The notes: a model not told the origin generated them from the letters alone. Shown: positions 6,739 through 20,215, counted from the first letter of the stretch. The stretch is 64,000 nucleotides of DNA from Obrimoposthia wandeli (GCA_977020255.1 CDROCS010004085.1:1-64000), one strand, 5' to 3'. Numbers and translations: made by a program.

Positions 6739-6880
6739 GTTTATGCGATAAGAAAAGTAATAAAATAAATGGGTTATAAAGTTCAATGAAAAATGCAGAT
6801 TATTGTAAATATAATGTTGCATTTATGGTTTTTATAACCTGTTATGTTTAAACAACGAGATCATAACAAGTGAGTACATT

Positions 6881-7039
6881 ATGAAAGTTGTTGTTGAATT
6901 CCAAAAAAATGGTATCTATCGAGATCACTACTGGGAAGGGTACTTTCACTCTGTTAAAGGTCAGCTGCGTGAAGTAACACCGTCTTACGCGGCACAGTTA
7001 ATTACAGAGTCAAAAGCGACATTGTATGTGAAGGAGTGA
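6881..7039 (+). CDS. Small hypothetical protein (52 aa)
   Basis: MKVVVEFQKNGIYRDHYWEGYFHSVKGQLREVTPSYAAQLITESKATLYVKE. It is below the ORF-track cutoff, has GAG upstream of the ATG, and a terminator follows at 7131. Confidence 0.65.
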   Translation: MKVVVEFQKNGIYRDHYWEGYFHSVKGQLREVTPSYAAQLITESKATLYVKE

Positions 7040-7045
7040 TAAAAC

Positions 7046-7584: not shown

Positions 7585-8316
7585 ATGACTTACAAAATTT
7601 TGATTGTAGAAGACGACCCTATTATTAGGATGAAGATTAAGGGGCACTTCGCCCAGGCTGGTCACACTGTTTTCGAGGCTGATAACGGTGTTGGGATGAA
7701 AGAGATCCTTAACCGCGAGAAAATTGATTTGATCCTGCTGGATATTAACTTACCAGGAGAAGACGGCATACAGCTCACCCGTGACGTGAGGAACAGATCT
7801 GACATTGCTATCATCATGGTCACAGGCCGAACTGACCCCATCGACCGAATTTTAGGCCTTGAAATGGGCGCAGATGACTATGTAACCAAGCCTGTAGAAC
7901 CACGAGAGCTGCTGGTACGTGCAAAAAACTTGCTATGGCGTATCCAGCTTACCCGTGACGCTTTGGAACAGGCAGAGGCTGCTTGGTCGCAACTGGAAAA
8001 GGATGATAGTACATTCCGGTTCCTGAACTTTGAATTTGATGTTGCTCAGCGTCAGCTGTCAAAGGGTCACGATATGGTAAAGCTAACCAAAGCTGAATAT
8101 GAGTTGCTGGTCGCTTTCATCACGCACCCCAACCGGGTTTTAGGTCGAGACCGGCTTCTAAACCTGATCTCTCATCGAGTTGATACACCGAGCGATCGTA
8201 CCGTTGACGTTTTGATACGCCGGCTGAGAAACAAGATGGAAGAGTGCATCAAAAACCCCAAGATTTTTATCACCATACACGGTGAAGGTTACCTCTTTGC
8301 GCCAGAGGTCGCTTAG
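7585..8316 (+). CDS. torR: TorR-like OmpR-family response regulator
   Basis: Receiver motifs ([29 protein letters not shown]) and TorR/ArcA-type [14 protein letters not shown], followed by a winged helix ([19 protein letters not shown]). It may be a paralog rather than the true torR. Confidence 0.85.
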
Positions 8317-9692
8317 CCCCGTGAATATAACAATAAGAGCCAAGCTTTCATTCATTATGTGCGCCTCATTGCTGACAATGAGTGGTTTTTTTATCACAAG
8401 CCTTATGAATACGGAACAATCTGTTCTTGCGACGGAACAAAGTAATGTGAGTGTTAAGGTTGCTAAGTTATTGAATGATAATTTAAAGGGCCAGGTTGAT
8501 ACCGTTACCCGCTCCCTTTCCTATTATTATGAGAATTCGAAGCTAGAAAATATCAAGGCAGAATTAGCGACTGATATCACTACGTTTAGAAATGCCATAG
8601 ACAATATTTATAACAACAGTGACTCTGCGGCCGATGCCGAAACCAGCATTCATGCTTTTATCAATGAATACCGCTGGGACAATGGCCGGTATATCTTTGC
8701 CTATGATGCCGCCTCAATAGTGAACAAGGCTAACGGAGCCAACGTCAGTATTATCGGCACCAGTGCTTATGACAAAAAAGACACCAATGGCAACTATTAC
8801 GCACGAAATATTGTCAGTGCAACCAAAGCCAATGCTATTGGGTTTACCAGTTATCACTTCTTAAACCCGGAAACCCAAAAAGTCGAAGAAAAACTGACGG
8901 CATCGTTTTATTTTGAACCGTTAAACATGGTTGTTGCGACGGGCGAATACATCAGTACATTAAGGCGAGATGAACTAGAGGCGGCTCTTAATACTATCAG
9001 TTCATCAAAATACGGCCAAAATGGCTACTTTTGGGTACAGGACAAGAGCGGCAAGATCCTGGCTCATCCCAAGGCCGACATTATCGGTACTGTCATTCCG
9101 TCAACAACATTCAGAATTGCCGACAGAATAAAAGGCCAATCCGAAGCCTTTGTTAAAATTGCTTACGAAAATCCGACCACCAAACAAACAGAGAACAAAA
9201 TTGCCTATGCCAGAAATATTTTTCCTGAATGGGGCTGGACGATTGCTACTGGCACTTATGAGAGCGACATCACTAGCATTCAAGATGGGCTGACTCGCGC
9301 TACGGCAGAAATTTTTAATGACAAAGTGTACATGAACATTGCTACTGCCGCTGTACTGCTGATTATTGCTCTGCTGGTCGCAACCTGGTCGATCAATAAG
9401 ATTGTTAGAGGCTTAGTGATCCTCAAAGAGCGCATTGATACTTTATCGACCGGCGAAGCCGACTTAACCTCACGGATTGATATCACGTCACATGATGAGT
9501 TGGGCGATATTGGCAAGTCGGTAAACAACTTCATTATTTATCTGCAATCCATGACTCTGGAAATTTCGCAAGCCTCTGCTCATATCACTGACGGTATCAA
9601 GCACGCCTCCGAGACGACCGCAAACACTCAAAAAGCCAGTGACCAAGCACTGTTGTTAAAATATGATGTGGCTGAGGCTCCTGGCAGTATGA
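8313..9692 (+). repeat. Diverged direct duplicate of 12559-14055 (MCP 5' half)
   Basis: Shared sequence starts at TTAGCCCC(G/A)TGAAT and ends at CTGGCAGTATGA. Many identical codon runs occur in between, and this copy has two in-frame deletions (45 and 72 nt). Confidence 0.95.
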
Positions 9693-11428
9693 CAGCGGTA
9701 ATAAGAAAACTGGCGGCGGGTGATCTCTCCGTCGATATTCCGCGGGGGGAAAGTGACGAGATAGGCCACCTTGCGGATGCAATATCGGTATTTAAGAAAA
9801 ATGCTTTAGCCTTGCGAGAGCACCAGAATGAACTACAAAAACTGGTAGATGAACGTACGACGCAGCTTACAGAGGCCAATAACGCACTAAACAGTGAAGT
9901 CGCCAAGCATGCAAAAGCACGAGAACAAGCGGAACAGGCCAACAAAGCCAAATCGTCTTTCCTTACCCACATGAGCCACGAGATCCGCACCCCCATGAAC
10001 GGGATAATGGGGACGCTACACCTCCTTGATGATACAACCTTAGACAACGCACAAAAACACTACACTAAAACCATTATTTCATCAGGCGAAATTCTGATGG
10101 GGGTACTCAATAATGTCCTGGATTATTCTAAAATCGAAGCCGGGTGTTTCGATATTAATGAAACAAATTTCCGCACCGATTTGATTGTGGGCAATGTTGT
10201 CAACATGCTTAAAGCCAGAGCCAAAGAAAAGAACATCAAACTAACCTATGCAGTCGCAAGCGATGTTCCAATTTGTTTGTATGGTGACGCCAACAAAATC
10301 ATCCAGATCCTCATTAACTTAGTCGGTAATGCCATTAAATTTACCAATATGGGAAGCGTCACAATCCGGGTGTTGGTCAAGGAGCAACTGGCGGAAGAAC
10401 GATTTTTGCTCACGTTTGAGGTGCTAGACACTGGTAAAGGTATTAATGAAGAAAAACAGTCGGCTATCTTTGAGCCTTTTGAGCAGGCGACTCAATCAGA
10501 ACGTGGTACCGGATTAGGTTTGCCTATCAGTAAGCGGTTCGCCGAGATGCTTGGCGGGGAGTTAACTGTGTACAGTGAGCCGGATATCGGTAGCCGGTTT
10601 ATTCTCATACTGCCGTTGAGTGCAGCCGAGGAGTGCGATCCAATTTCCACAGACGAGCCTGTTTCCCTTACTGTCCCGCCATTGAATATTTTGCTGGTAG
10701 AAGATAATGAAACGAATGTGCTGGTCGCTAAAGGATTCCTAGACAAGCTTGGTCACAAGGTTGTTGTAGCCATGACAGGAGAAATGGCACAACGTGCGAT
10801 AGAGGATCATCATGTCGACATCATCTTAATGGATATTAATCTACCGGATACTGACGGTGTGACGCTGACGGGTAGATTGAGAGAGAAAGCAAATCGCTAT
10901 ATACCCACTATTGCCTTCTCTGCCCATGTTTTCCGACAAGACATTGAATCATACCTTGAGGCCGGCCTCGATGGTTTCTTAGGTAAACCGGTACAGTTTA
11001 AGCAGATGCAGACTGTTATCGCTAATGTCTATAACGGCCAATCCAGCAAGTTCGATGCAGTTAGGGATATAGATCGGGACGTGGGCAAGGAACCTGCCGT
11101 CACTCTTTTTGACTACTCGGTGCTGGAGAACGATCGGCAGATCCTCGGAGATGGACTAGTGCAGGATATGGTAGAAATGTTTTACGTACGTTCGGCGACT
11201 CTGACCCATGAAATAAAAATCCAGAGCTCAGCAAAATCTCTTGAGTTGCTAGTTCACAGCCTTAAAAGCTCTGCCGGAGCCATTGGCCTAATTGCCCTGA
11301 GTAAAGCCTGTGAGGAACTGGAAATAGCTTGTAAGCAAGGGGCAGATGAGCTGGCGTTAACGAAATTGTCAGCGGCCTTACTTGCTATCTATGCCCCTTC
11401 TATCGACAGACTGAAAGAAGAATTTTAA
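8321..11428 (+). CDS. Chimeric hybrid sensor kinase: MCP-derived Cache sensor and HAMP + TorS-like HAMP-HisKA-HATPase-REC-HPt
   Basis: GTG 8321 aligns with the ATG of the MCP at 12567, and the N-terminal ~460 aa align with that MCP. These are followed by [10 protein letters not shown] (H-box), [22 protein letters not shown], a receiver ([16 protein letters not shown]) and an HPt ([13 protein letters not shown]). Confidence 0.92.
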
Positions 11429-11432
11429 GGAA

Positions 11433-11473
11433 AAAACAAGGGTGAATGCTGTTTAATGGCATGCCCTTGTTTT
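11433..11473 (+). terminator. Probable terminator hairpin after the hybrid kinase
   Basis: AAAACAAGGGT ... GCCCTTGTTTT stem. Confidence 0.55.
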
Positions 11474-11799
11474 ATTACCTCTTTTTTGCATACTGCACTT
11501 ACCGTTAACTTGTCCTGATTTTTTCCTTATTATCAACACACCTCTCAGAATTAAACATCACTTACGCCTCGATAAAACGAACTGATTTATATCTAACCTG
11601 CTGATACTTAATAAATAAGACCTGCGCGCAATATCGATGAGGGCAATCTGTTCATATTTTTACGCATTTCTTTAATACTTGTTCTCAAAAAAAATGCATG
11701 ATTTGAACATCAACTGATTGCACGTAAGTTGTTGCATAAGTTGAAAGGAACTTCTGAGACAAGAAGTACTTCTGTTGTATTTTTCGAAGGATAGAAGAT

Positions 11800-12381
11800 A
11801 TGTCACTACCAAATGTAATTCTAACTGTGCTGAGCAATCGCGACGCAACCGGTTACGATATCACCAAAGAATTCTCGCGCAGCATCGGTTATTTCTGGAA
11901 AGCGAGCCACCAACAGGTGTATCGCGAATTGAATAAAATGGCCGACAACAACTTGGCGACCTCCCGACTTGAACCGCAAAATGGCAAACCGGATCGTAAG
12001 GTCTACTCCATTACCGAGCTCGGACGACAGGCTCTGTTTGAATGGTTCCAGGAACCTGCTCGCAATCCAAAGATCCGCGATGAGTTTTTGGCCAAACTAC
12101 TGGTTTGTGGTGTTCATAATTCAGAACCATTGCAAGAACAGCTTGAGGCACTCATTCAAGAGTCTCATTCGCTAATGAACAACTATGATGAACTGGAAAA
12201 AATCCACTTCGCGAATTACAAAGAGATGGATCGCCAGTTTCGTCTTGACCGCCTGACCCTGCGCCGCGGCATGCATAACCGCCAGGCGTGGATTAACTGG
12301 GCAGAAGAAGTCCTCATTGAGCTTAAAGCAATCGAGAGTTCGAAAAGCAGCTGCGCGGGAGAAGTCCGTCTTTGTGGATAG
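11800..12381 (+). CDS. aphA: AphA-like PadR family regulator
   Basis: MSLPNVILTVLSNRDATGYDITKEFSRSIGYFWKASHQQVYRELNKM is nearly the canonical Vibrio AphA N-terminus, and KPDRKVYSIT, RDEFLAKL and RLTLRR follow. It has an extra ~15-aa C-terminal tail and may be a paralog. Confidence 0.88.
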   Translation: MSLPNVILTVLSNRDATGYDITKEFSRSIGYFWKASHQQVYRELNKMADNNLATSRLEPQNGKPDRKVYSITELGRQALFEWFQEPARNPKIRDEFLAKLLVCGVHNSEPLQEQLEALIQESHSLMNNYDELEKIHFANYKEMDRQFRLDRLTLRRGMHNRQAWINWAEEVLIELKAIESSKSSCAGEVRLCG

Positions 12382-12566
12382 ATTGCCTGAAGTGGATGTG
12401 TTTGGTTGCTTCTTATAGCACGAGAGTTTAAAAGGTTGTTGATAATATATTGAATAATAAAAATGTAGTTCGACAACCGTCATGAATATATTTTCATTTG
12501 CGACGTAACTTAAATATAACAATAATATTTTTCAAATGTTGTGTGTAGAACAAAAGGTTTAGCCCC

Positions 12567-14642
12567 ATGAATTTAACAATAAAAGCCAAGCTGGCCGCAT
12601 TGCTATGCGTACCATTGCTTACCATGAGTGGTTTTTTTATTACAAGTCTTATAAATACGGAAAATTCTGTTCTTGAGGCGGAAAGTAGCAATGTCAGTGT
12701 GAAGGTCGCTAAGTTATTGAATGATAACTTAAAGGGGCAGGTTGATACTGTTACCCGCTCCATTTCTTATTATTATGAGAATTCGAAGCAAGAAAATATC
12801 AAGGCAGAGTTGGCGACTGATATCGCGACGTTTAGAGACACAATTGAAAGTATTTATAACAACAGTGCTTCCGCTGTCGATGCAGAAACCAGTATTAACG
12901 CTTTTATTAACCAATATCGGTGGGGCGGTGGCCGTTATATCTTTGCGTATGATGCCGCAACAGTTATTAACAAGGCTAACGGTGCCAACGAAAGTATTAT
13001 CGGCACCAGTGCTTATGATAAAAAAGACACCAATGGCAAATATTATGCGCGAAATATTGTCAGTGCAGCTAAAGCCAATGGAATTGGGTTTACCAGTTAT
13101 TATTTCTTAAACCCGGTCAGCAATAAAGTCGAAGAAAAATTGACAGCATCGGTTTACTTCGAACCGTTGAACCTGGTTATTGCGACGGGTGAGTACATTA
13201 GTACCCTAAGGCAAGATGAACTTGAGGCGGCCATTAAGACCATCAGTTCATCTAAATACGGCCAAAATGGCTACTTTTGGGTACAAGATAAGAACGGCAA
13301 GATCCTGGCTCACCCAAAGGAAGAAGTTATCGGTACTGTCATTCCGGCAACAACATTAAAAATTGCCAACAGCATCAAAAGCCAATCCGAAGCTTTTGTT
13401 AAAATCGCTTTCGAAAACCCGGCCACCAAACAGACAGAAAACAAATTTGTCTATGCTCGAAATATTTTCCCGGAGTGGGGCTGGACCATTGCGACTGGCA
13501 CTTATGAAAGCGACGTCACGAATATTCAAGATGAGCTGACTAACGCTACGGCAGAAATTTTTGAAGACAAAGTGAATATGAGCATTGCAATTGCCGCTGC
13601 ACTGCTGGTGATTTCTCTGCTGGTCGCGGCTTGGTCGATCAATAAGATTGTTAAAGGCTTAGTAATGCTCAAAGAGCGCATTGACACCTTATCGACCGGC
13701 GAAGCCGATTTAACCTCGCGGATTGATATTACGTCACATGATGAGTTGGGTGATATTGGCAATTCGGTAAACAACTTCATTATTTATCTGCAATCCATGA
13801 TCCTGGAAATTTCACAAGCCTCTGCTCATATTACTGATGGTATCAAGCAGCTTGATGTGCAGTCAGAGCAAAATAATCAGGCGTTAATCCAGCACGCATC
13901 AGAGACGGATCAAGTCGTCGCGGCTATTACTGAAATGAGCGCAACGGCTGAAACCGTCGCACAGAATGCTACCGAGACAGCCGCTAACACCCAAAAAGCC
14001 AATGATGATGCGCTGTTGGCAAAAGACGATGTGCTTGAGGCGTCTGGCAGTATGATTGTTCTGGTGGATGAAGTGGGTACGGCATCAGCGAGCATTAATA
14101 CCATGAACGAGAATACTCAGCAGATTGTCAGTGTGCTAGGTGTGATTGGTGAAATTGCCGATCAGACTAACTTGCTGGCGCTCAATGCCGCTATCGAAGC
14201 AGCACGCGCCGGAGAGCAAGGACGAGGCTTCGCCGTGGTTGCCGATGAAGTACGATCGCTTGCTGCGCGTACCCAGTCTAGCACCGCAGAAATCAATGAG
14301 ATCTTAACGACATTACGTCAGGATGCCTCTAGTGCGGTTGCCGCAATGGAAGTGACGAAAACAAGCTGCGAACGTACAGCTGAAAATGCTGAGCGGGTAT
14401 CAAACAGTCTGGATGCGGTGACCGGATCCATTGTCGAAATCAATGATCTCAGCACCCAAATTGCAACCGCTTCTGAGGAGCAAAGTTCGGTAACCGAAGA
14501 AGTAAGCCGTAATATGAATAACATCCGCGAGATGGTTCAGGAATTGACCCAAAACGGACAAGCTACGGTAGACAGTACTCAAAGCTTGGCAGCTGCCAAC
14601 ACCCAACTGAACACTCTGGTCAGTAAGTTTAAATTGCAATAG
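12567..14642 (+). CDS. Methyl-accepting chemotaxis protein with tandem Cache domains
   Basis: TM1, periplasmic Cache motifs ([29 protein letters not shown]), TM2, HAMP and the MA hairpin [34 protein letters not shown]. Confidence 0.96.
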
Positions 14643-14692: not shown

Positions 14693-14722
14693 AAAGGCTT
14701 CTAAATCTAGAAGCCTTTTTTT
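14693..14722 (+). terminator. Rho-independent terminator after the MCP
   Basis: AAAGGCTTCT-AAATCT-AGAAGCCTTT followed by a T run. Confidence 0.8.
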
Positions 14723-15110: not shown

Positions 15111-15147
15111 CTTGTTGTTGTGTTAATCAATCAGATGTGTGAAAAAG

Positions 15148-16122
15148 ATGCTTATGGACCACTTCAATCATAGCCACGCTCCTTTCATTTTAGATGACAA
15201 AGCGGTGAGTGAATTATTACCTAAACTAGATGTTCAATCGCTCATGAAAGAGCTGTTTATCGCGATCGCAAATCAAAAGGCGGTTCAGCCAAATCAAACA
15301 CTCACCCCTTTTCCTGATGATAAAGGGGACTACATTACTTACCTGGGTGCGCTAGCCGATGAAGGCGTATTTGGTGCTAAACTTTCACCGTATATAGTGA
15401 CGGAAACCACGCCGATTATTACTGCATGGACGAATTTGATGTCGATGAAGACTGGGCAGCCACTAATGTGGTGTGATTCTGGACAACTGACGGTAGAAAG
15501 AACGGCAGGAACAACGGCCCTTGCGATTGATTGCCTTGCACCTCAACAAAGCCAACAATTGGCTATGGTCGGGGCTGGAAATGTTGCATTAGCTCATCTT
15601 CGTCATGTGTTAGGTCTGCGTAATTGGAAAACCATTTCTGTTTTCGCGCCAGAACTAAGTGACGATCTAGAACGCCAAGCGATTGTTCGTGCCATGGACC
15701 CAAGAATCGAAATATCAACTTCCGTCATGGATGCGATAAACCAAGCGGATGTCATCATGCTTTGCACCTCTTCAGCGACCCCAGTGATTGCTAAAGCGCA
15801 TGTAAAGGCATCGGCACTGATCACTTCTATCAGTACCAATGCAGTGAACGCTCATGAAATTCCACCAGAAATGCTTAACGATATCGACGTTTATTGTGAT
15901 TATAAAGAAACGACACCGAGCAGTGCGGGAGAAATGTGTTTAGCGGTTAAGTTACACGATTGGGATACCAATAACATAGTCGGAGACCTTGCAGATCTTG
16001 TTTCCGGAAAGTGTGATATGCCTAATTATAAAAGACCTGTTTTCTTCCGTTCAATTGGATTGGGGTTGGAAGATGTTGCGATCGCTTATGGCATTTGGCA
16101 ACAAGCTCTTAAAGGTGAATAA
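15148..16122 (+). CDS. dauB: Ornithine cyclodeaminase/mu-crystallin family, DauB-like NAD(P)H-dependent amino acid dehydrogenase
   Basis: Matches recalled Pseudomonas DauB segments: KLSPYIV..TAWT.LMSM.TGQPL..CD, MLCTSS, TSISTNA..AHE.P, VYCDY..TTP.SAGEM and FFRSIGLGLEDVA. Start could be 15139, 15148 or 15154. Confidence 0.85.
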   Translation: MLMDHFNHSHAPFILDDKAVSELLPKLDVQSLMKELFIAIANQKAVQPNQTLTPFPDDKGDYITYLGALADEGVFGAKLSPYIVTETTPIITAWTNLMSMKTGQPLMWCDSGQLTVERTAGTTALAIDCLAPQQSQQLAMVGAGNVALAHLRHVLGLRNWKTISVFAPELSDDLERQAIVRAMDPRIEISTSVMDAINQADVIMLCTSSATPVIAKAHVKASALITSISTNAVNAHEIPPEMLNDIDVYCDYKETTPSSAGEMCLAVKLHDWDTNNIVGDLADLVSGKCDMPNYKRPVFFRSIGLGLEDVAIAYGIWQQALKGE

Positions 16123-16169
16123 CCTAAAACTCCTGCTACTTTTAGACCATGATTAATAAAGGATATACT

Positions 16170-17294
16170 ATGAAAATCAAAGAGTTTGGTGTCGAAATTT
16201 GGATGAACGAATACGAAAATAGCTGTGTCTATAATTTAGCAGAAACGTGTGTGGAGTCATTGACGGTCGAGCAGCTACTCGATATGGCGGGTAAAAGAGA
16301 TTGCATCATCGACGAACTGTTACCCATGAAGCTGACATATGGTGCGATTGAAGGCTCTGATCGACTGCGTGATAATGTGACCGCGCTTTATCATAACCAG
16401 AAGCGCAGCAATATATTGATCACCCATGGTGCGATTGGAGCGAATGCACTGATTCATGAAACCTTAATTGAACCGGGTGATCGCGTCGTATCTGTGCTTC
16501 CTACCTATCAGCAGCATTATTCGATCCCTGAAAGCTATGGCGCAGACGTACAGGTGCTAAAGCTGAAAGAAGAAAATCAATTTTTACCCGATTTAGAACA
16601 GCTACAAAAACTCACGACGAAAAATACTCGTCTAATTACTATCAATAATCCTAATAACCCTACAGGGGCATTGATGGATGAAAGTTTATTAAAGCGAATT
16701 GTAGACATTGCTCGAGCTTGTGACGCATATATCTTGTGTGATGAGGTGTATCGAGGCACCGATGCGGAAGGTAATGGTTTTACGGCTTCGATAGCCGATC
16801 TATACGAGAAGGGGATCAGCACGGCAAGCATGTCGAAGTCGTTTTCCTTGGCTGGATTAAGACTTGGTTGGATTGCAGCCCCTGAAGAGCTGATTGAAAA
16901 AGTCTGCATCCATCGTGATTACAATACGATAAGTGTTGGCATGTTGAATGATCACTTTGCTTGTATTGCCCTAGAGTGTCGTGACGCCATCTTGCAAAGA
17001 AGTCGCGATATTTGTCAAACCAACCGAGCTGTGTTGGATGCTTGGGTCAAAAATGAACCACTGATTAGCTATGTGAAGCCAACATCGGGAACGATAGCGT
17101 TACTAAAATATGATTTAGACATGTCCTCGCGCGATTTTTGCGTGAAGTTGCTTGAATCAAAAGGGGTGATGTTTACGCCTGGAAGTGTATTAGAAATGGA
17201 AGGGTATGTAAGGGTAGGTTATGCCAACAACCCACAAGTGCTAAAAGAAGGGTTGAAGAAGGTTTCTGAGTTTCTTGCTGAAATATCACACTAA
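16170..17294 (+). CDS. Class I/II PLP-dependent aminotransferase
   Basis: NNPNNPTG, CDEVYRG and SMSKSFSLAGLRLGW (PLP lysine). AAGGA precedes ATG 16170. Confidence 0.93.
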   Translation: MKIKEFGVEIWMNEYENSCVYNLAETCVESLTVEQLLDMAGKRDCIIDELLPMKLTYGAIEGSDRLRDNVTALYHNQKRSNILITHGAIGANALIHETLIEPGDRVVSVLPTYQQHYSIPESYGADVQVLKLKEENQFLPDLEQLQKLTTKNTRLITINNPNNPTGALMDESLLKRIVDIARACDAYILCDEVYRGTDAEGNGFTASIADLYEKGISTASMSKSFSLAGLRLGWIAAPEELIEKVCIHRDYNTISVGMLNDHFACIALECRDAILQRSRDICQTNRAVLDAWVKNEPLISYVKPTSGTIALLKYDLDMSSRDFCVKLLESKGVMFTPGSVLEMEGYVRVGYANNPQVLKEGLKKVSEFLAEISH

Positions 17295-19474: not shown

Positions 19475-19812
19475 TTCTTTACCTCTGTTTTTGTTGTGTT
19501 ATTTTCTTCACGAGATTGTTGGTACCAAAATCGTTTGCGACCGATTGAACGAGACATAAGCATCCTTAGCTTTATTATCAGCATGGCAAATCACAATAAG
19601 TACAAACTTAGATATGATCTTAGCCATTGATATTTAATGTTAATAATTTTATTTATTATAATATAACGAAGTGAATAAGAAACGTAACGACACATACAAG
19701 AAGCAGATGTTTGAAATGTTAATATTTTCGAAGATATGATATAAACTATTGATTAATAATGGTTAAAAAGTGACGTAAATGGTAATGAAACCATTTACGT
19801 CGACGTTCGAAA

Positions 19813-20025
19813 TTAAAGCGCTACTACGTTAGCTGCTTGAAGACCTTTTTGGCCTTGCTCTACTTCGAAAGATACTTTTTGGCCTTCAGCTAGCGTTTTA
19901 AAGCCTTCTGAAGCGATTGCACGGAAGTGAACAAATACGTCAGCGCCGCCGTTGTCTTGAGTAATGAAACCAAAACCTTTATCTTCGTTAAACCATTTTA
20001 CTAGACCAGTTGTTGTATTAGACAT
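19813..20025 (-). CDS. cspA: Cold shock protein (CspA family)
   Basis: [22 protein letters not shown] (RNP1) and DVFVHFRAI (RNP2), 70 aa, AAGGG RBS. Confidence 0.97.
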
Positions 20026-20215
20026 GTTGTGTCCCTTAATATTAAATTCATAAATTATCACGATAATGTGATGTGCTGAGAGCTTGAATTATTGAATGTT
20101 ACGATGAAGCTAAGGGAAACACTGAGGATAACAACATTAACGAAGAAATTCTGAGGTTTTACTTTTACTTGATGTTTCATTAATAACTCTGAACAACAGA
20201 GCGAGATGGATAATA
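20026..20215 (-). promoter_or_regulatory. Probable long 5' UTR of cspA
   Basis: About 190 nt of ORF-free leader with a hairpin (CTCTG-AACAA-CAGAG) near its 5' end. Long structured leaders are typical of cspA genes; the boundaries are estimates. Confidence 0.35.

Follow-up and report, generated by a model that had tools for sequence, protein, structure and literature searches.

The systems closest to the locus described here are the TorS-TorT-TorR systems of Escherichia coli, Shewanella and Vibrio, the engineered chimeras of chemoreceptors and histidine kinases, and the sensor domains found in front of many different outputs. Signal transduction is modular, and families of sensor domains are shared among chemoreceptors, kinases and cyclases. 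Engineered chimeras, such as Taz (Tar-EnvZ) and NarX-Tar, have also made clear that sensor and output modules are recombinable. The stretch of DNA analyzed here (hereafter the window) is GCA_977020255.1 CDROCS010004085.1:1-64000, 64,000 nucleotides (nt), used in its full length; the loci compared with it are labelled L and a number, and the compared protein clusters P and a number. Four consecutive genes on the plus strand (7585-14642) form a cassette: a torR-type gene for an OmpR-family response regulator (7585-8316; 243 amino acids (aa), receiver Asp53), a gene for a chimeric hybrid sensor kinase (8321-11428; 1035 aa, GTG start), a PadR-family gene referred to as aphA2 (11800-12381; 193 aa) and a gene for a methyl-accepting chemotaxis protein (MCP) with a sister dCache_2 sensor (12567-14642; 691 aa). 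The chimeric kinase gene is a natural, in-frame fusion of an MCP gene and a TorS gene from Photobacterium, and the probability that it encodes a functional chimera of single origin is put at roughly 80%.

Like the TorS-TorT-TorR systems, the locus has homologous HAMP, HisKA, HATPase, receiver and histidine phosphotransfer (HPt) domains, a partner regulator that is a TorR equivalog and a tor box decamer nearby. Unlike these systems, the chimera lacks the PF21689 sensor and both transmembrane (TM) helices of TorS, and the surroundings of the cassette, in the window as well as in L003, L084 and L089, have no torT, torCAD or other gene for a periplasmic binding protein. The tor box is also found ahead of an AphA paralog, and the transmitter belongs to an island-borne subfamily. 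As in Taz and NarX-Tar, a chemoreceptor sensor, TM segment and HAMP domain are combined with a histidine kinase output, and the fusion point is in or beside HAMP. In contrast to these constructs, the Photobacterium chimera is natural, no younger than a clade of Photobacterium species, and still adjoined by its donor MCP; it also keeps two HAMP domains split by a degenerate remnant of 35-68 aa and not a clean in-register junction. As in other shared sensor families, different outputs are served by ligand-binding domains of one type, but here the donor lies next to the recipient, the breakpoint can be placed to the base and a later exchange of DNA is indicated. No description of an MCP-TorS fusion was found in the literature searched on Cache-TorS proteins in Photobacterium, domain shuffling between chemoreceptors and kinases, and AphA paralogs.

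A search for direct repeats joined 8313-9692, in the kinase gene, and 12559-14055, its counterpart in the MCP gene, through three blocks with spacings of 4246 and 4363, which differ by an indel of 117 nt whose bases are absent from the kinase. The two proteins align from residue 1 through to the residues GSM, with one gap of 39 residues on the kinase side and a BLASTP score of 772 bits, and over the 458 shared codons of the codon alignment (kinase codons 1-458) the identity is 85.2% for nucleotides and 81.7% for amino acids. The homologous segment opens about 10 nt ahead of the start codons, where it coincides exactly with the TAG of torR, and extends to ...CTGGCAGTATGA (9692 and 14055, respectively). 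The MCP-derived segment of the kinase (8313-9692) encodes TM1, dCache_2 (aa 37-317), TM2, the first HAMP domain (HAMP1, aa 358-408) and a remnant of the methylation helix. By Pfam, dCache_2 and HAMP are present in both proteins, MCPsignal in the MCP alone, and HisKA, HATPase_c, Response_reg and Hpt in the kinase alone. The dCache_2 domain (PF08269) scores 152 bits in the kinase (cutoff 26.5), with the tandem Cache placed between two TM helices, and 158.8 bits in the MCP, where it is followed by HAMP and MCPsignal (PF00015, 139.5 bits). No Pfam match to PF00015 was found in the kinase, in which just 44 aa of the first methylation helix are left. It could be argued that this similarity is due to chance or to an artefact of assembly. 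This is given practically no weight, since the 181 substitutions over 1281 aligned bases show an excess at third positions (43/29/109), both reading frames are intact and the same gene order is observed in the independent assemblies L003, L089, L099, L135 and L137. The earlier note, made from the sequence alone, had described the first region as a diverged direct copy of the second, with the elements from TM1 to the start of the methylation helix about four-fifths identical, a switch at GSM to a second HAMP and a TorS-like phosphorelay, and an assembly artefact as unlikely; all of this is borne out.

The kinase gene continues after the breakpoint with a TorS-derived transmitter (9692-11425), which runs from the middle of the HAMP helix AS1 through a coiled coil to HisKA, HATPase_c, the receiver and HPt. 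In the alignment with the canonical TorS P0060, which reads ...LNEITKVVKRLTEGDL at this point, the breakpoint lies within AS1, and about the last 10 residues of this helix are retained in the chimera. Kinase residues 457-1015 match positions 363-951 of the TorS model TIGR02956 with 585 bits; this is lower than the whole-protein cutoff of 676.5, for the sole reason that the N-terminal (sensor) third of the model is missing. The phosphorelay residues are intact, namely His553 (nt 9977), Asp838 (nt 10832) and HPt His979 (nt 11255) in the kinase and Asp53 in the regulator, and the HATPase_c domain has the motifs DTGKGI (G1) and GTGLGL (G2). The TorT-docking periplasmic sensor of TorS (PF21689) was not detected by Pfam in the kinase, where dCache_2, sCache_2 and Cache_3-Cache_2 are matched instead, while the canonical relatives P0060 and P0121-P0123 do carry PF21689. 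The product of the torR-type gene scores 365.5 bits with the TorR model NF008034 (cutoff 275), compared with 222 bits for the next family, ArcA, and consists of Response_reg and Trans_reg_C according to Pfam. Its DNA-binding domain can be aligned with that of E. coli TorR without gaps in the recognition region. A TorR-like gene abutting the kinase had also been claimed, and indeed the torR stop codon lies 4 nt ahead of the kinase start, for which reason translational coupling of the two genes is likely. The kinase start is most likely GTG at 8321, which is in register with the ATG of the MCP gene and is occupied by ATG in the kinase orthologs; the mechanical start of the open reading frame (ORF), at 8282, would overlap torR.

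The origin of the TorS half can be traced through its closest canonical relatives. The nearest canonical TorS proteins (P0121, P0122, P0123 and P0060), from sources including Vibrio parahaemolyticus (P0121), Vibrio alginolyticus and Shewanella oncorhynchi (P0123), are 50-53% identical to the chimera transmitter, while the housekeeping TorS of Photobacterium and Vibrio is only 40-42% identical; strain SDRW27 carries both a housekeeping TorS and the chimera. The genes of P0121, P0123 and P0060 are each preceded by a regulator gene, and the regulator of L001 has 243 aa and is 74% identical to the TorR of the window. Such parent-like sets of TorR, in part a TorT-like protein, and TorS are located at 9216-12820 in L001, 7005-12868 in L085 and 8717-12910 in L088, in an apparent mobile island with two RecT genes, DUF2913, Toprim_3/DUF7146 and dozens of small unannotated genes. 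In L085, an unusually long TorT-like gene of 729 aa with two matches to periplasmic binding proteins is placed between the regulator and the kinase. No tor structural genes were found near the island-borne sets of L001, L085 and L088. The TorS half of the chimera is thus traced, by similarity, to the island-borne TorS/TorR subfamily and not to the housekeeping TorS. Since the closest canonical pairs are island-borne and the housekeeping TorS is only 40-42% identical, the recipient of the Cache sensor was a second, paralogous and probably mobile TorS/TorR system. A search for a parental TorS-type gene beside torR had been proposed; canonical TorS (50-53%) and TorR (74%) relatives were found on islands.

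The same architecture is present in 16 protein clusters that are 71-92% identical to the kinase of the window and come from no fewer than eight Photobacterium species. The named sources are Photobacterium lipolyticum, Photobacterium frigidiphilum, Photobacterium sagamiensis, Photobacterium proteolyticum and the strains SDRW27 and J15, in addition to metagenome-assembled genomes and metagenomes. All 16 orthologous clusters have the junction GSM|TA[AV]I[KR]KLAAGDL in common, and a deletion of 15 aa in the MCP helix is shared by all kinases. The identical junction and the shared deletion in every kinase point to one old fusion event in an ancestral Photobacterium and not to an event in a single strain. 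When a tree was built from the sensor region, all kinases but P0007 grouped in a single clade (100/98), and the approximately unbiased (AU) test did not reject a common clade of the syntenic MCPs (p = 0.32). The MCP family has a wide distribution, with members in Photobacterium, Psychromonas, Moritella, Shewanella and Vibrio, while among the 120 closest relatives of the transmitter, Cache domains are present in Photobacterium proteins alone and the rest are canonical TorS. The direction of transfer is read as MCP to kinase, because part of the MCP helix persists in the kinase and the fusion is restricted to Photobacterium, in contrast to the widely distributed MCP family; this agrees with the proposal that the sensor had been copied from the MCP onto the kinase. 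P0007, which is encoded on a 643,997-bp contig of P. lipolyticum, has the common junction and a sensor that groups with the MCPs P0023, P0024 and P0030; at alignment columns of about 300-350, it is 82-88% identical to these MCPs and 62-72% identical to the other kinases. A second exchange, with a different MCP paralog, may account for this sensor. Also in P. lipolyticum, the two distinct fusion kinases P0003 and P0005 (91% and 87% identical to that of the window, respectively) are each encoded on a 568,721-bp contig, and the cassette or the kinase may have been duplicated in this species. The annotation of these proteins varies: a fusion kinase is named TorS in one genome (P0004, P. frigidiphilum) and 'cache domain-containing protein' elsewhere, and P0033 of Photobacterium marinum, a true MCP of 691 aa, is annotated as 'Sensor protein torS'. 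Such names are misleading for the fusion kinases and for this MCP.

The similarity between the two sensors in the window is higher than would follow from an old fusion alone. The synonymous divergence (dS) between the kinase and the MCP is about 0.45 in the window and 0.51 in L089, while the cassettes of the window and SDRW27 differ by a dS of 1.2-1.8 for torR, the kinase, aphA2 and the MCP alike, and the kinase and MCP within SDRW27 by 2.0 (saturated). Within genomes, the sensors of the kinase and the MCP are 80-83% identical at the amino acid level in the window group, 74-77% in SDRW27 and ena11, and 64-65% in J15 and uncPh; the compared MCP is non-adjacent in uncPh, and adjacency is not established in J15. 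Because the fusion predates the splits between species, yet the kinase-MCP dS in the window is 0.45 as opposed to 1.2-2.0, the kinase and MCP sensors of the window lineage must, judging from these distances, have undergone a further exchange of DNA at some time after the fusion, through gene conversion or re-copying. The 85% similarity reflects this later re-exchange and does not date the fusion. Quartet counts against P. lipolyticum gave 25 orthology sites and 0 concerted sites, which places the re-exchange before the split from P. lipolyticum. Against SDRW27, 16 orthology, 10 concerted and 2 other sites were counted for amino acids, and 17, 17 and 4, respectively, for codon positions 1 and 2; third-position counts are confounded by the codon usage of the species and are not used as proof. 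A strict analysis of diagnostic columns between kinase and MCP sensors gave zero columns.

Along the 1.28 kb, the kinase and the MCP diverge homogeneously (chi-square p = 0.30), and no identical run exceeds 37 nt, the length predicted by chance. A mosaic of recent conversion tracts is rejected for these two reasons, and the even divergence suggests a single exchange event. At odds with one even event, 16 kinase-specific or MCP-specific residues survive, of which five are in TM1; patchy repair or selection for class-specific residues is a possible explanation. The homogeneous divergence would also be expected if the fusion had taken place recently in the window lineage and the cassette had then spread by horizontal transfer, so that gene conversion would not be needed, and the protein tree fits this as well, since it places the kinase clade as sister to the MCPs of the window group and not to all syntenic MCPs. 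Such a recent origin is very unlikely, however. The tree is weak at its deep nodes, and, as mentioned above, the AU test did not reject a single clade of the syntenic MCPs. In addition, the kinase orthologs have dS values from 1.6 to saturated, which exceed the kinase-MCP dS of the window and indicate that the kinase lineages split before the kinase and MCP of the window last shared DNA, and in SDRW27 the two genes stand in the same order yet are saturated.

Selection on the fusion was assessed from the ratio of nonsynonymous to synonymous divergence (dN/dS). Between the kinase and the MCP of the window, the ratio is 0.21 at a dS of 0.46 (0.17 for the Cache part and 0.11 for HAMP), but as this comparison mixes two lineages, the window was compared instead with the orthologous cassette of L089. 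This gave 0.14 for the kinase sensor, 0.18 for the MCP sensor, 0.20 for the kinase transmitter, 0.09 for torR and 0.08 for aphA2, and no amino acid change at all in TM2 and HAMP1 of the kinase. The sensor, HAMP1 and transmitter of the kinase are under purifying selection, and the suggestion in the earlier note that selection has kept the fusion is supported by these ratios. The linker between the two HAMP domains (9560-9691, aa 414-457), a degenerate remnant of the MCP signalling helix, behaves differently, with a dN/dS of about 1.5 (5 nonsynonymous changes and 1 synonymous change). The absence of 117 nt from the kinase is best explained by two deletions that keep the frame, a shared one of 45 nt and a lineage-specific one of 72 nt, beside the short repeats ATC[A/C]AGCA and C[A/C]GAGAC. 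In 17 kinases, the linker has lengths of 35, 40, 42, 43, 44, 49, 50, 52, 66 and 68 aa, occurs in five of the seven heptad phases and contains 0-6 prolines, while its ends, EISQASxHITD at the output of HAMP1 and DVLEAxGSM at the junction, are conserved in all orthologs. In an AlphaFold model made with 35 sequences, the tandem-Cache sensor (aa 40-330) is predicted as two alpha/beta modules on a long helix with a per-residue confidence (pLDDT) of 84-95, and residues 430-456 as coil with a pLDDT of about 30; as every cytoplasmic part of this monomer model is poorly predicted, it is weak evidence on the linker. Taken together, the MCP helix between the HAMP domains is decaying into a variable, proline-containing linker.

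These features of the linker raise the question of whether the fusion is a relic, with a Cache sensor that has lost control of the kinase and a transmitter that is constitutive or reads a cytoplasmic or membrane cue. The range of lengths and phases, the up to six prolines, the dN/dS of about 1.5, the predicted coil and the retention of just about 10 final residues of the TorS AS1 helix would all fit with this. In a relic, on the other hand, the kinase sensor would hardly be as constrained as the MCP sensor in the same pair of species (0.14 versus 0.18), and the unchanged HAMP1, the two conserved ends of the linker and the persistence of the architecture among species whose cassettes differ by a dS above 1.2 also argue against it. 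Loss of control by the sensor is therefore considered quite unlikely, and a working chimera remains the preferred reading.

The best candidate for the output of the system is aphA2, which the earlier note had not recognised as an AphA-type gene with a tor box. Its product matches Vibrio cholerae AphA (PDB 1YG2; E 1.2e-73, residues 1-178) over the full length, contains the Pfam domains PadR and Vir_act_alpha_C and is 63-66% identical to Vibrio AphA. Unlike V. cholerae AphA, it is encoded by a second gene copy of 193 aa with another C-terminal tail and promoter, found only with the torR-kinase cassette, while the canonical Photobacterium AphA (187-190 aa) is a separate protein encoded elsewhere; P. 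sagamiensis has both types, and the canonical AphA of Photobacterium profundum is 83% identical to the aphA2 product. By these comparisons, aphA2 is a paralog of aphA and not its canonical ortholog. The tor box consensus of E. coli is CTGTTCATAT (PMC9239176). The only perfect match in the 64-kb window is located at 11648-11657 (+), 143 nt upstream of aphA2, and a second TGTTC core follows at 11680-11684, 31 nt downstream of the box. A perfect box is also present at -151 to -157 of aphA2 in L089, L003, L099, L135 and L137, and a box with nine of the ten positions in L084, so that six of the seven cassette loci have a perfect box. None of the 43 cassette-free loci with aphA-type genes and enough upstream sequence has one, and the promoter block around the box is common to the cassette loci only. 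As a positive control, three perfect boxes were recovered beside torR of E. coli (L023). Base composition gives an estimated probability of about 0.005 that a perfect 10-mer would arise by chance in the intergenic DNA next to torR and the kinase gene. No tandem boxes (TTCATA-N4-TTCATA) or clustered degenerate boxes were found near the cassette, and no conserved box was found upstream of torR. Boxes with one mismatch, TTGTTCATAT, located 157-212 nt upstream of PadR genes in L140, L142, L143 and L145, were rejected as unrelated, with no TorR or kinase gene near them. These PadR proteins are 31-33% identical to aphA2; the four loci are probably related to each other and derived from one study, and the match to the box is probably due to chance.

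For the proposal that the tor box and aphA2 form the output of the system, the chances are judged to be about even. A different possibility is that the system still controls respiration of trimethylamine N-oxide (TMAO), with the regulator acting on torCAD-type operons elsewhere and the box at aphA2 being incidental. The regulator does score above the TorR equivalog cutoff, its DNA-binding domain aligns with that of E. coli TorR without gaps in the recognition region, and the box at aphA2 is the E. coli consensus, so that cross-talk with tor promoters is possible. Nevertheless, no tor structural genes or torT are present in the 64-kb window or beside the cassette in L003, L084 and L089, and the parent-like pairs on islands are not beside torCAD either. 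Photobacterium also has a separate housekeeping TorS, 40-42% identical, and SDRW27 has both; furthermore, the sole perfect box of the window is the one at aphA2. Continued control of TMAO respiration is for these reasons regarded as unlikely.

The ligand of the Cache sensor can be approached through the sCache_2 receptors, which include PscD (5G4Y/5G4Z), Adeh_3718 (4K08), the V. parahaemolyticus protein 4EXO and TlpB (3UB6). Each of the two modules is nearest to sCache_2 domains, both by sequence and by fold, with E values of 1e-5 to 4e-8 and target TM-scores of 0.67-0.83; the best solved matches are 4EXO, 4K08 and TlpB (0.75-0.83). The matched structures were crystallised with pyruvate, acetate, propionate or urea. 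In PscD, the carboxylate is contacted by Tyr90, Trp92, His103 and Lys156 (PMC5062169), and these align with Tyr236, Trp238, His249 and Lys293 of the proximal module, which thus has the Tyr/His/Lys triad. Unlike in these receptors, the two modules are arranged in tandem, with 17-24% identity to them, and the distal module has Asn for His. The kinase and the MCP are identical at the four proximal positions and differ (Tyr/Phe) at the pocket-lining residue 282, the equivalent of Trp145, as would fit two proteins with the same or a similar ligand. The odds that they share one ligand are put at about even, and a carboxylate as the ligand is a tentative suggestion that is somewhat more probably wrong than right.

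The results show that a 5' segment of 1.4 kb from a dCache_2 chemoreceptor gene took the place of the TorT-dependent sensor of TorS, both of its TM helices and the first part of its HAMP domain, and that the recipient kinase brought its own TorR-type regulator from the island-borne subfamily. For the signalling pathway, the following can be proposed. A small periplasmic ligand, possibly a short carboxylate, would bind to the Cache sensor and modulate autophosphorylation, and the phosphate would be passed along the His-Asp-His relay to the TorR-type regulator. The regulator would then bind to the tor box upstream of aphA2 and alter the transcription of aphA2 and possibly of the downstream MCP gene. 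In this way, one cue could act at two speeds, quickly on chemotaxis by way of the MCP and slowly on transcription by way of AphA2. The widest version of this proposal is that torR, the kinase, aphA2 and the MCP gene form a self-contained behavioural and transcriptional module, in which one metabolite is read by two sensor copies that have been re-matched at least once by gene conversion, a private AphA copy and possibly the chemoreceptor gene are driven through the tor box, and the signal crosses a non-helical linker. As a whole, this version is doubtful.

Several points count against a chimera that works as a rewired two-component system. The sensor of P0007 falls outside the other kinases, and monophyly of all kinases has an AU p of 0.047, with the group chosen after the tree was seen. 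The linker varies by 33 residues, occurs in five of seven heptad phases, contains prolines and is predicted to be disordered, which is hard to reconcile with a rigid helix that couples HAMP1 to the truncated second HAMP domain, and the sensor could be poorly coupled. With respect to the output, there is one perfect tor box here, while the E. coli torC promoter has three and, in addition, a fourth, weaker box (PMC9239176). The second TGTTC core is not fully conserved (TTATTC in SDRW27). The cassette loci are related, so that finding box and cassette together in them amounts to a single evolutionary observation, and the conserved promoter block could serve another regulator. With respect to the ligand, the distal module keeps the equivalent of Tyr90 but has Asn in place of the equivalent of His103, and the guess is taken from alignments at about 20% identity.

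If the proposal is correct, a chemical cue would switch an AphA-like regulon without input from cell density, and a functional tor box at aphA2 would link a metabolite cue to a type of regulator that is otherwise under quorum sensing in the Vibrionaceae. The signal would also have to pass a non-helical, proline-containing linker, which is not predicted by helix-rotation or piston models of HAMP domains. The chimera is a natural counterpart of the engineered ones, with the donor next door and a breakpoint that can be read to the base, and its more than a dozen diverged orthologs represent a natural mutagenesis series of the junction. What goes beyond routine domain shuffling is the visible donor and breakpoint, the decaying linker between the HAMP domains, and the evidence for re-matching of the sensors, combined with the predicted link to an AphA paralog. 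This makes it possible to test how much linker disorder is tolerated by a HAMP-to-HAMP relay, whether a chemoreceptor and a kinase that have sister sensors continue to bind one ligand, with or without the aid of gene conversion, and how a TorS/TorR pair may be retargeted from TMAO respiration to a new target.

The gene order torR-kinase-aphA2 is kept in the window, L003, L084, L089 and L137, and kinase-aphA2 in L099 and L135, whose loci end before torR would appear; the MCP gene is next in most cassette loci, but not in L084. The cassettes of L135 (LLEN01000413) and L137 (LLEM01000224) contain frameshifts, with the tblastn matches of the kinase, MCP and aphA2 split among overlapping pieces; in these metagenome contigs, sequencing errors and real decay are both possible. 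Past the kinase gene of the window, RNAfold predicts a terminator-like hairpin with a U run at 11435-11475 (+), formed by the stem AACAAGGG...CCCUUGUU followed by UUUU (-23.3 kcal/mol for 11425-11500). No terminator was seen between aphA2 and the MCP gene in the window, and a strong one is present past the MCP gene (14693-14718), so that aphA2 and the MCP gene may be co-transcribed.

Upstream of the cassette, a 52-codon ORF (MKVVVEFQKNG..., 6882-7040, +) is located within the 930-nt gap between an EamA transporter gene and torR, with a promoter-like site matching 10 of 12 positions ahead of it (6786-6815). Past the MCP gene, a gene of the ornithine cyclodeaminase/mu-crystallin family and a class I/II aminotransferase gene are found (15139-17294, +); an aminotransferase gene is also present in SDRW27 at a similar distance past the cassette. 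Further downstream, the cspA thermoregulator RF01766, a cold-shock element of the 5' untranslated region, is matched over its full length on the minus strand within a gap between ORFs (19769-20205), with an Rfam score of 114.7 bits and a gathering score of 78.

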